Origin: Thalia democratica
Taxonomy: Eukaryota
NCBI GenBank assembly: GCA_965202585.1
Contig: OZ241832.1
Coordinates: 29,946,001-30,010,000 of the forward strand
Direction: 5' to 3'
DNA: 64,000 nucleotides
The notes beneath the pieces are model-generated. The model was given only the letters and a program-made list of their open reading frames with translations, was not told where the DNA came from and ran no database searches. Positions within the stretch are counted from its first letter, which is position 1; each line of letters opens with the position of its first letter. Positions 1,093 to 29,098 of the stretch are shown piece after piece. Made by a program: the position numbers and the translations under genes.

Positions 1093-2049
1093 ATGAACAA
1101 CTTCAAAGGAGATTTTCAAGTTGCTATCGCTTGGTTCCTGTTGATTTTATCAGCATATCAAGCAACAACGAGCTTAATCTACACGATCAAAATGCACAAG
1201 TCTTCAAAACGATTGGAAAACGTGCTGGTTTTACTGTGCAATATTTTCTCAATACCATGTACTGTCTCATACTTTATAGTCACAATGAATTACCAACGTG
1301 AAAACTCTTTGTTATTAAGTAGTAGTCTGTGTAAATCTTCTACATTCATTCTAAAATCAGTGGTTATTGCAAACAAATTTGTCTACACCTTGATATTAGC
1401 TTTTAGATACATGGTACTAAAACAAAATAAAGACGAAAACGAAAATTATGGTTTGATTGCCAGACGCGCTTTTAGATTAGTTGCTGGTGTTTTCGTTACT
1501 TTGTTGTTTCAAGCCTTATTTGACCACACATACACATCGCATATCAATGATGAACACTTTTACTCGCAAAATGACTTCAGCAAGCATCTGGCTTACAATT
1601 TAGTAACTGCAGGCTGCTTTTTCGTAGCAATTGTACTGCAAACTACTATTTTGGCCCTAACAATACGGCCAAGTGATGACCGATCAGAAAACAACCAAAA
1701 CAAACCAACTTTAAAGTTGCAGAAAAACTCAAGAAGAAACGTATTATGCACTTTAGTAATTTACTTAAACGACTTGGGACTTATTGCTGTACAGCTCATG
1801 ATAAATTTTGTTCAAATACCGATGACTGTTGTTTTGTTGACCAACGTAGTTCTATACTGCGTCACGTTGACATTTTCGTTCGAAGACTACAGAGCAAGAA
1901 CTTTTCCTTTCAAGTTATTAAAACCCGACAAAGCCTTTGAACGGCAAGTTGTTCAAACAATAACTGTGAAAGATCATATACTTTTAAAACCGGAAAGCTT
2001 CAAGTTAAAAGTACTTCACACATACAGAAAACCAAGTAAAAAATATTGA
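1093..2049 (+). CDS. Intronless orphan seven-transmembrane (class A GPCR-like) receptor, 318 aa
   Basis: The only long ORF in the window. It has seven hydrophobic segments (FQVAIAWFLLIL; NVLVLLCNIFSIP; FILKSVVIANKFVYTLILAFRY; LVAGVFVTLLFQALF; LVTAGCFFVAIVLQTTILAL; VLCTLVIYLNDLGLIAVQLM; IPMTVVLLTNVVLYCVTLTFSF). There is a Cys at the top of TM3 (SLCKS), a DRY-like FRY at the end of TM3 and a basic third intracellular loop. Confidence 0.75.
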   Translation: MNNFKGDFQVAIAWFLLILSAYQATTSLIYTIKMHKSSKRLENVLVLLCNIFSIPCTVSYFIVTMNYQRENSLLLSSSLCKSSTFILKSVVIANKFVYTLILAFRYMVLKQNKDENENYGLIARRAFRLVAGVFVTLLFQALFDHTYTSHINDEHFYSQNDFSKHLAYNLVTAGCFFVAIVLQTTILALTIRPSDDRSENNQNKPTLKLQKNSRRNVLCTLVIYLNDLGLIAVQLMINFVQIPMTVVLLTNVVLYCVTLTFSFEDYRARTFPFKLLKPDKAFERQVVQTITVKDHILLKPESFKLKVLHTYRKPSKKY

Positions 2050-27246: not shown

Positions 27247-27621
27247 TCATTGACCAAGCGGGGGAAACTCTTTTCTATCGTCAATGTTAGGGAGTTTTTG
27301 TTGCAATTTGACGTTGTTAGCAGGAAGGCTTTTCTTGCTTATCTTGTTGAAATTCTTCTTTCTCTTCTTTTTCTTCTTTTTCTTGTTTTTCCGTTGTTGC
27401 AACTTGACGCGCTTAGCTGGATCATTTTCTTTAATTCGCTTAAGGTCACTCCCCATATTCCACAGGATGTTCGTGAACAGTCCCAGGTTGATGTGCTGCA
27501 GCTGTGTGAGAATATGGATGTACAACCCAACTGTCATGTACGCGTCATCAAAAGCCGGGCAGTTTGTGTTTATGACGTGAACATGGCATTTTCTGCATAT
27601 ATACTCTAATTTGTTTCTCGC
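27247..27621 (-). CDS. CNOT7-like: CAF1-like terminal exon with poly-Lys tail
   Basis: Acceptor TTTTCACAG, encodes ARNKLEYICRKCHVHVINTNCPAFDDAYMT...RKNKKKKKKKRKK...LPNIDDRKEFPPLGQ-TGA. Confidence 0.9.
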   Translation of the reverse strand, partial: ARNKLEYICRKCHVHVINTNCPAFDDAYMTVGLYIHILTQLQHINLGLFTNILWNMGSDLKRIKENDPAKRVKLQQRKNKKKKKKKRKKNFNKISKKSLPANNVKLQQKLPNIDDRKEFPPLGQ

Positions 27622-29098
27622 CTGTGAAAAGATTGAATACTTTTTAGGATATAGTTTTTTTGTCTTAAATAGATTTAACTACGATATAAGTAATATGAAT
27701 TATTAAGTATTCACATGTTTAAAAATATAAACAAAACAAGAACTAACAATCTCTAAAAAATCGTCGCAGGAAGTTACTAAATGCTTCAAATCTATGTAAT
27801 TTGGAAAGTAACTAGCTACCATATAGTTGAACTGTTTTACATTCTGTATTTTGTAATAATCATCTGTTGCTAACTTCAGAACGTAAGCCAAATCTCGGGA
27901 TCTAAAAGTTTAAATGTTTTTTCATGTATTAGTTAAGTTAAAAACAACTAATGTAAAAATTAAGGTTAAAAATTTTAACTTATTTTGTTCGTCATTCAAT
28001 ATCAAAGCATTTATTTACTAAGCTTTATTATTAAGACTGTTTTTTATACAAGGTTTCTTATAACATTCTTAGATATGTTCTAGGTTTTTTTTTTTTTACT
28101 TTTTCTTAATATATATATATACCCTTGAAACGTGACCCAAAACAAGTTTGGATTTTTCATCAATCTTGTTTTCCGAAGAAAGTTTTTAAATTCTGGAATT
28201 GTGATACCGTACGTCTCGTTCAGTGACAAATCTATGCCTCTACCTTTCATATATTCAATTGATTCTTCTGTTGATAGATCACCCCTGTATTATAAGTGTT
28301 ATAGAGTTATTATACTAGAGCTTTTTAAATCGCATATGTAATGTAAAGTTTTTATGATGGAATGCGTTCTAAATTACTTACGCTATTAATAAAATCATTA
28401 TTGAAGCATTATTTCAAATTATATAAATTTTATTAAAAAAATATATATAACTTAATTATCTACAAGTATTTACTGATAGTTTACCTAAACCTAAACCATA
28501 ATACCTTAAAATATTGTGACTCATATTTATGTTTTAAAAAAAAGGCAACATAAAATGTTTTAAAGATTAAAAAAAAAACTAACTCTCTTGGAAATTTCAT
28601 AACAAAGTTCTCCCTGTAACGTAGTCTGTAATTTGCATCCCAGAATGACATCCCGATAGTAACGGGATTAGTAACATCACAATTCCTCTTCATTATTTCA
28701 AACGCTGCCTGACTTCTATTTGGTATCTTATAATCTTTATCAGTCCCCATGGGATCTCCTGGGTATTCTGTGTCCTAAAAATAACACATACTAAGGTGTT
28801 TTGTTTATTAGCAAATTGTTTAAAGTCGTTGTGAAATATTCTTCGATACAAACAATACAACACAAGAAAGTAAAAAAAAACCCCAACTTTTTCTTTCTTA
28901 GGTGTAAACTGAAGCAAAACAAATCATTTTGCTTTTTGTTCACAGTCCTTTTTTTAGTAAGTAAAACGATGTTTAATAAATACAAGTTAGACTAACCAAG
29001 CCTACATAACGACAATAGGGTAAAATATTTTTTAATTTTTTTTCAGAATTAGTTAGGTTCACAAGAGTAGCTTTCGGTTGGTCAACTTCAGTTTCCAT
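27247..29098 (-). CDS. CNOT7-like: Divergent CAF1/POP2 (CNOT7/8)-family DEDD 3'-5' exoribonuclease with basic C-terminal tail, about 327 aa
   Basis: Exons 29098-28997, 28774-28584, 28284-28123, 27901-27748 and 27621-27247 join in frame (984 nt including stop) with GT-AG ends. CAF1-collinear motifs: RYVGL|DTEYPG (YVAMDTEFPG), IMKRNCD (LLRCNVD), DLSTEESIEYMKGRGI (DMYAQDSIELLTTSGI), WVTFQGSRDLAYVLK (WLSFHSGYDFGYLIK), YFPNYIDLKHLVTSC (FFPVIYDVKYLMKSC), PAFDDAYMT (QAGSDSLLT) and LWNMGS (LYGLGS). Confidence 0.9.
27748..27901 (-). CDS. CNOT7-like: CAF1-like exon 4
   Basis: Acceptor CTTTTAG, encodes SRDLAYVLKLATDDYYKIQNVKQFNYMVASYFPNYIDLKHLVTSCDDFLEI, donor GTTAGT. Confidence 0.9.
28123..28284 (-). 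CDS. CNOT7-like: CAF1-like exon 3
   Basis: Acceptor ATACAG, encodes GDLSTEESIEYMKGRGIDLSLNETYGITIPEFKNFLRKTRLMKNPNLFWVTFQ(G), donor GTATAT. Confidence 0.9.
28584..28774 (-). CDS. CNOT7-like: CAF1-like exon 2 (catalytic DTE motif)
   Basis: Acceptor TTTTTAG then DTEYPGDPMGTDKDY...MKFPR(E), donor GTTAGT. Overlaps ORF 28481..28750. Confidence 0.9.
28997..29098 (-). CDS. CNOT7-like: CAF1-like exon 1 (METEVDQPKATLVNLTNSEKKLKNILPYCRYVGL)
   Basis: Ends in YVGL followed by donor GTTAGT, directly before the DTE exon. The upstream acceptor at 29120-29119 means the exon may start at 29118. Confidence 0.75.

Follow-up and report, generated by a model that had tools for sequence, protein, structure and literature searches.

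What becomes of a CAF1 protein once the surface that ties it to the CCR4-NOT complex has been rewritten? The question is raised by a gene in a 64-kb stretch of the Thalia democratica genome (G000:C8:29,946,001-30,010,000 of an 802-Mb assembly), which we call the window throughout and which is AT-rich (G+C content, GC, of 21-32%). The gene lies on the minus strand from window position 29098 to 27247, has five exons with GT-AG introns throughout and an open frame of 327 codons (327 amino acids), and encodes a very diverged CAF1/POP2-type DEDD protein of the RNase D fold, i.e., a CAF1 homologue. Its helix alpha5, where CAF1 proteins contact NOT1, is recoded. The reading that we favour, as probable though by no means assured, is that of an intact, selectively maintained and very diverged CAF1-type gene from an expansion of the family, whose product would act outside the standard CCR4-NOT complex.

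The gene and its place in the CAF1 family

The original prediction rested on three motifs, all of which are present on the minus strand (IMKRNCD in exon 2, NFLRKTRL in exon 3 and TSCDD in exon 4). The interval it gave, 27748-28774, covers exons 2-4 and misses exons 1 and 5 (Table 1). The first exon aligns with the N-terminus of canonical CAF1 proteins and of clade A, one of the groups of divergent paralogues considered below. All eight splice sites (four donors and four acceptors) are canonical, and the chance of a 327-codon open frame at this base composition is ~2e-11.

The family of the protein is not in doubt once the exons are joined. The spliced protein reaches 138 bits against a hidden Markov model (HMM) of 111 canonical CAF1s, while 200 shuffles of it stay at or below 4.4 bits, and the claim that it is a CAF1 paralogue holds. 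A phmmer search gives 124 bits to P0002, its nearest full-length relative; proteins named as CNOT7/8 or CAF1 follow at 65-80 bits. P0002 in turn matches PF04857 at 74 bits, and the only PDB chains that it matches at E <=1 are CNOT7, CNOT8, S. pombe Caf1 and Pop2, not PARN or TOE1. The window protein is collinear with human CNOT7 over ~260 residues. Single exons, by comparison, give no CAF1 match reaching threshold in Pfam and nothing significant in the PDB (the best is Pop2, at E = 0.9), so the family is recognisable only after splicing; an exon-wise PF04857 scan of the genome missed the locus.

Residue-by-residue comparison relies on human numbering taken from the phmmer alignment of P0073 (named CNOT7 by its source) to PDB chain 4gmj_B, which is full-length human CNOT7 of 285 residues; this numbering puts D40 and E42 at the positions given in PMC8216464. 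Two alignments are used, one made with MAFFT L-INS-i from ~125 CAF1 sequences and the other, independent of it, with hmmalign to the profile of the 111 canonical proteins. Both aligners place R64 and V68 at C67 and L71, and R135-K136-T137-R138 at M141-T142-S143-G144. They also agree on K, N, K and P at A137, E138, L147 and E149, and on Q151, D155, C224 and D229 at H157, D161, H225 and D230. The hand alignment behind the original prediction, which had R at C67, RKTR at M141-G144 and an acidic residue at K203, is therefore right. MAFFT alignments in which each exon formed a separate row misplaced exons 1 and 5, and whole-protein alignments are used instead.

In the tree, the window protein groups with clades A and B at 99% support in the Shimodaira-Hasegawa-like approximate likelihood ratio test (SH-aLRT), apart from every canonical sequence, and the grouping survives removal of clade B and other long branches. 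The protein thus falls with the divergent paralogue clades and does not place as a CNOT7 orthologue. A formal alignment and phylogeny had been proposed for this protein; the tree, which covers CAF1 sequences, supports the paralogue placement.

The next question is whether the genome has a conventional CNOT7 as well. It does, as predicted: tblastn with P0073 and manual splicing recover a canonical orthologue on C6 at ~74.0 Mb, with seven exons and 255 residues, its last coding exon not being located. This protein keeps DTEFPGVV, LMTSG, SVYDFGY and HQAGSDS, scores 350 bits against the canonical HMM and nests among canonical CAF1s in the tree. Its G+C content at third codon positions (GC3) is 0.73, that of the window gene 0.42. 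The last exon recovered is followed directly (C6:73,998,6xx) by a tandem duplicate of its own end and donor site.

What the original prediction had pictured, a single paralogue that escaped from the complex, does not hold, as the gene is one of ~25 related loci. Searches with PF04857, P0073 and the window protein reveal ~25 CAF1-like loci besides the canonical CNOT7, together with several PARN-like genes. The loci form a lineage-specific, atypical CAF1 family, and it is within this expansion, separately from the single canonical CNOT7, that the window gene arose. Clade A, a group on C5 and the window gene all have Arg or Lys at position 141, with the SG motif that follows deleted or replaced. 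The PARN-like loci, which carry the GHN motif within PF04857, suggest that this branch has also multiplied in the genome.

Relatives outside this genome are few, and marine metagenome or metatranscriptome assemblies are the source of every one. Exon 5 searched against 1.84 billion representative proteins finds one true relative, P0120 from a Tara Oceans scaffold, which is 38-40% identical overall. Two further exon 5 matches are tetratricopeptide repeat (TPR) or other repeat proteins and are judged to be chance. A scan of Joint Genome Institute (JGI) metagenomes with the last-exon alignment gives 363 pattern matches, 0 of them confirmed.

Table 1. Positions of the window gene, its notable residues and the related loci (window numbering where no contig is named; human CNOT7 equivalents after the equals sign)
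Feature	Location	Strand	Content
Exon 1	28997..29098	-	codons 1-34; ATG at 29098; N-terminal helix up to the residue preceding DTE
Exon 2	28584..28774	-	DTEYPG (D35, E37 = D40, E42); DPMGTD beta-L1 segment; MKRNCD (R64 = C67, V68 = L71)
Codon R64	28685..28687	-	aligned with C67 (CCR4 LRR contact)
Exon 3	28123..28284	-	helix alpha5 KNFLRKTRLMKNP; K131 = A137, N132 = E138, R135 = M141, K136 = T142, T137 = S143, R138 = G144, K141 = L147, P143 = E149; Q151 = H157
Codons R135-K136-T137-R138	28164..28175	-	aligned with M141-T142-S143-G144
Exon 4	27748..27901	-	SRDLAY (D155 = D161); TSCDD (D198 = K203, MAFFT)
Exon 5 and stop	27247..27621	-	NCPAFDD (C224 = H225, D229 = D230); last helices; Lys-rich tail; terminal KEFPPLGQ
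Codon C224	27559..27561	-	replaces DEDDh general-base His225
Codons 201-216	27585-27618, 27751-27755	-	loop around the K203 equivalent
Lys-rich tail	27250-27447	-	66 residues
Matches of the 2,686-base contig	27434-27582, 27825-27908, 28121-28174, 28635 onward		
Other open reading frame	1093-2049	+	318 amino acids
Canonical CNOT7	G000:C6:73,998,668-74,006,037	-	seven exons
Window sub-clade	window gene; C8 54.29 Mb; C4 67.87 Mb		partial copy on C8; pseudogene on C4
Clade A	C5 31.41 Mb; C1 78.66-78.80 Mb; C254; C1 32.45 Mb		two-exon genes, DEDDh set intact
Clade B	C1, C4, C6		~9 copies, several with in-frame stop codons
C5 group	C5		long N-terminal extensions
L016	C1 79.58 Mb		Asn at 141; in none of the groups
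Further CAF1-like loci	C1:0.62-1.0; C4:8.4-10.1; C6:0.15; C5:6.8, 16.4, 68.7, 68.8, 83; C1:79.5-79.6 Mb		
PARN-like loci	C6:15.54, 15.58, 15.68 Mb; C240:8.7 kb, 55 kb		GHN motif, PF04857
NOT1 loci (L049, L050, L051)	G000:C4:42.87-42.89 Mb; G000:C6:28.350-28.359 Mb; G000:C6:28.374-28.383 Mb		MIF4G and Not1 C-terminal domains; C6 pair tandem

In the window itself, the 318-residue frame on the plus strand is the sole unspliced open reading frame of at least 130 amino acids in the 64 kb, and it has no Pfam match.

The partner surfaces and the NOT1 genes

The M141-NOT1 contact is the textbook handle for separating the complex-dependent and complex-independent functions of CAF1, and it is at this contact that the window protein departs most clearly from its family. 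Helix alpha5 of the protein, KNFLRKTRLMKNP, counts five basic residues against none in human CNOT7, with the changes A137K, E138N, M141R, T142K, G144R, L147K and E149P, and with S143-G144 becoming T-R. The contact list for NOT1 MIF4G comes from Petit et al. (PMC3510486), who find M141 to be central in the interface and M141R by itself to abolish NOT1 binding in human cells, an effect confirmed in mouse cells (PMC4726497). The natural arginine noticed in the original prediction does match this engineered mutation. Column counts over 111 other CAF1 proteins, drawn from fungi, plants, protists and animals, show how far the change goes: position 141 is always uncharged (M45, I32, T10, L8, V6, F3) and is R or K in none, position 143 is S in 103 of the 111, position 144 is G in 92 and position 147 is Leu or Met in 98.

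It is conceivable that the window protein is still a canonical CCR4-NOT subunit, bound to NOT1 or CCR4 via non-canonical sites. The atypical wheat TaCAF1Ia proteins still bind CCR4 and a different NOT1 domain (PMC9788937), and even among canonical CAF1s there is variation at several of the NOT1 and CCR4 contacts. All six of the alpha5 and loop contacts (A137, E138, M141, T142, L147 and E149) are changed in the window protein, however, when M141R alone abolishes binding; the widely conserved S143 and G144 are lost as well, and the complex has an orthodox CNOT7 with strong codon bias at its disposal. We consider such a retained subunit improbable.

The CCR4 and BTG/Tob surfaces are a different matter. 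The contacts with the leucine-rich repeats (LRR) of CCR4 are C67, L71, M107 and the beta-strand A48-P50 (PMC8216464); the three single positions read R64, V68 and L in the window protein. Column 67 is variable among the 111 proteins (C54, T14, A9, L8, K5). The K203 equivalent sits in a loop of variable length, where MAFFT gives D198 and hmmalign a Glu, acidic either way and never Lys, and column 203 varies too (E30, D26, K19). The mutation K203A abrogates Tob binding, as cited in PMC4656213. A search of the genome for the BTG domain (PF07742) gives no match, but it had no positive control, so that absence is not established. The canonical CNOT7 of this genome has Tyr67 and Met71, and at its K203 equivalent a Glu (MAFFT) or Phe (hmmalign), not Lys. 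The claims made for C67 and K203 carry little weight. The statement that all three partner surfaces are substituted is correct as to the residues, which do differ, and overstated as to their meaning, since two of the three markers lie in columns that vary in bona fide CAF1s. Only the substitutions in the NOT1 helix clearly exceed the variation of the family.

The beta-L1 strand (A48-P50), whose pairing partner is the first LRR, is a better sign of an altered CCR4 surface than C67. In place of VVARP one alignment has DPMGT and the other a three-residue gap, and this change is common to all the divergent paralogues aligned (clades A and B). Combining the helix and the strand, we infer that the known mode of docking on the canonical NOT1 MIF4G or on the CCR4 LRR would be closed to the window protein. 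A disabled canonical NOT1 interface, in particular, is a reasonable interpretation of the predicted contacts. A protein that does not dock in this way would work outside the standard CCR4-NOT deadenylase.

The other half of the interface has to be examined as well, for the genome has three NOT1 loci, each with MIF4G (PF16415) and Not1 C-terminal (PF04054) domains. NOT1 residues are numbered by adding 1088 to the 4gmj_A chain index, which reproduces K1218, V1250-F1252 and P1257-W1258 of Petit et al. The copy on C4 is orthodox and keeps K1208, P1209, V1251, F1252 and P1257. Both copies on C6 have K1208Q, V1251S and F1252Y, together with P1257D or P1257E. In the human complex P1257 forms the "central knob", touching CAF1 A137, M141 and N171 (PMC3510486), and the residues of the window protein at these three positions are K, R and D.

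Two NOT1 genes with Asp or Glu at 1257 raise the possibility of a switch to another scaffold, which rivals a stand-alone protein. The divergent CAF1-like proteins, possibly including that of the window, would dock on the NOT1-like scaffolds of C6 in a parallel CCR4-NOT-like complex, through a charge-swapped interface of CAF1 Arg/Lys141 and NOT1 Asp/Glu1257. The acidic residue facing Arg/Lys141 would be a plausible compensating pair, and for the two extra C6 genes there is a precedent in Plasmodium NOT1-G, a duplicated scaffold reported to have a specialised role (PMC8562791). The proposal draws on one complementary residue pair, not on a covariation statistic, and the C6 NOT1s might pair with other members of the family, e.g., with clade A and its intact DEDDh set. 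We regard this partner switch as tentative and on balance unlikely. The stand-alone nuclease of the original prediction is one possibility among others: partner switching competes with it, and the loss of both active-site histidines weakens it.

Active site, tail and constraint

Whether the protein can still be a nuclease depends on the active site. Under both aligners all four acidic DEDD ligands are kept (D35, E37, D155 and D229 for human D40, E42, D161 and D230), and both active-site histidines are replaced, H225 by C224 and H157 by Q151. H225 is the DEDDh general base and H157 a histidine specific to CAF1 (PMC8216464). Column 225 is H in 105 of the 111 CAF1 proteins and Cys in none. Replacement of the two histidines is a mark of the window sub-clade. 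The cysteine is common to the C8 54.29 Mb paralogue (NTSCPASDDA), the C4 pseudogene and the metagenome protein P0120 (EKCPAADDA); that it is kept in a relative just 38-40% identical argues for a maintained feature and against decay. Nuclease activity is uncertain, given H225C and H157Q. The protein may be a 3'-5' exoribonuclease with altered chemistry, where the two-metal site is intact and Cys stands for the general base, or alternatively a weakly active or inactive RNA-binding module.

The C-terminus carries an addition that human CNOT7 does not have. Its Lys-rich tail of 66 residues is 38% K+R and ends in KEFPPLGQ; P0120 ends in EEFPVLA, and a terminal EFPxL peptide is thus conserved. Searched against Pfam, PAM2 included, the tail matches no family at E <=1. 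A resemblance to PAM2 by eye (an EFxP core) is set aside, the Leu3 and Ala7 spacing being missing, and no claim is made of it. The basic tail and conserved EFPxL end would supply localisation or a new partner.

Exon differences are available from DNA contigs of two organisms or strains covering the locus. Among the differences listed, those outside codons 201-216 comprise eight synonymous and two non-synonymous changes (H239Y and E108K), a ratio with P = 7e-5 if 20% of possible changes are synonymous, which suggests that the coding sequence is under constraint. In the loop that surrounds the K203 equivalent, codons 201-216, two haplotypes differ heavily: a second haplotype, present in both sampled organisms, departs by 12 listed substitutions and by +1 and -1 indels that compensate each other, and outside the loop the remainder of the gene is nearly identical between the two. 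The idea that these hypervariable codons are an intron was rejected, as both the C8 paralogue and the metagenome relative conserve the stretch as coding sequence.

Also among the sequenced DNA is a contig of 2,686 bases (runs X1/X2), which is ~87% identical to the gene in the exons, has other intron lengths and stands at half depth. It is known from DNA only, its joints do not coincide with splice sites, and it suggests that a close paralogue exists which the assembly lacks.

These observations have to be set against another explanation, that the gene is a decaying or non-functional duplicate whose frame is open by chance. Its branch is the longest in the family tree, both catalytic histidines are gone and its GC3 is low; the hypervariable loop with its compensating indels would also fit. 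The open frame and the intact splice sites in AT-rich DNA argue otherwise, as do the excess of synonymous polymorphism outside the loop and the DEDD acids, Cys224 and C-terminal motif that the metagenome relative keeps at 38-40% identity. We give decay only a small chance.

A maintained gene acting outside CCR4-NOT remains the reading that we prefer, and a number of points weigh against it, of which the degraded sister copies and the missing RNA coverage also speak for decay. The two sister copies of the gene are degraded, those at C8 54.29 Mb and C4 67.87 Mb being truncated or carrying stop codons. At 2.3-2.5 changes per site the window protein has a very long terminal branch, and the protein itself is absent from the library of 1.84 billion representative proteins. 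No RNA run covers the locus, and the gene is read from DNA. The polymorphisms listed mix haplotypes with the paralogous contig. On the side of the partners, the loss of binding is judged from sequence, columns 67 and 203 are not diagnostic of it, and several alpha7 contacts to NOT1 (I184, L187 and F188) differ in bona fide CNOT7 proteins too. The wheat proteins that stay in the complex and the two extra NOT1 paralogues with altered CAF1-contact residues likewise count against independence.

The family among known CAF1 systems

Animal CAF1 is normally present in one or two copies and is highly conserved. Compared with human CNOT7/CNOT8 (CAF1a/b, the DEDDh deadenylase of CCR4-NOT), the window protein belongs to the same domain family and has the same four acidic ligands; it differs in the recoded alpha5, in beta-L1 and C67, in H225C and H157Q and in the extra tail. 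S. cerevisiae Pop2 has a degenerate SEDQ-type active site, yet bridges Ccr4 and Not1. Like the window protein it is a natural CAF1 with a non-standard active site, and its structure matches the divergent family. In another respect it is the mirror image, because in Pop2 the partner surfaces stay and it is catalytic residues that have gone, whereas the window protein keeps the catalytic acids and has lost partner-surface residues along with the histidines.

A functional analogy for a stand-alone protein is given by PARN, TOE1/Caf1z and PNLDC1, which are PF04857 DEDD nucleases acting without NOT1, although the window protein is not specifically related to them, as the matches of P0002 indicate. 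A parallel in genome organisation is wheat TaCAF1Ia (PMC9788937), a lineage-specific, much-duplicated and atypical CAF1 subfamily beside typical CAF1 genes. The wheat proteins are without the DEDD motifs and bind CCR4 and NOT1 via new sites, whereas the window protein keeps DEDD, belongs to an animal genome and is known from its sequence.

One may go a step beyond the single gene and suppose a second, parallel CCR4-NOT-like system, in which CAF1-like proteins with Arg/Lys141 sit on NOT1s with Asp/Glu1257, insulated from the canonical complex, with the window sub-clade as a "DEDD-Cys" variant carrying an EFPxL recruitment peptide. This model, built from the predicted interface residues and the tail, is speculative and we think it rather doubtful. 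It nevertheless describes a natural experiment, for one genome contains many CAF1-like genes with the M141R equivalent, an orthodox CNOT7 and extra NOT1s with an acidic contact residue. If the pairing is true, it would show a central mRNA-decay machine duplicated into insulated modules. The Cys-for-His active site would be new chemistry in the DEDD superfamily. If the pairing is untrue, this marine animal, itself little studied, still has a nuclease family that evolves fast and is probably specialised.

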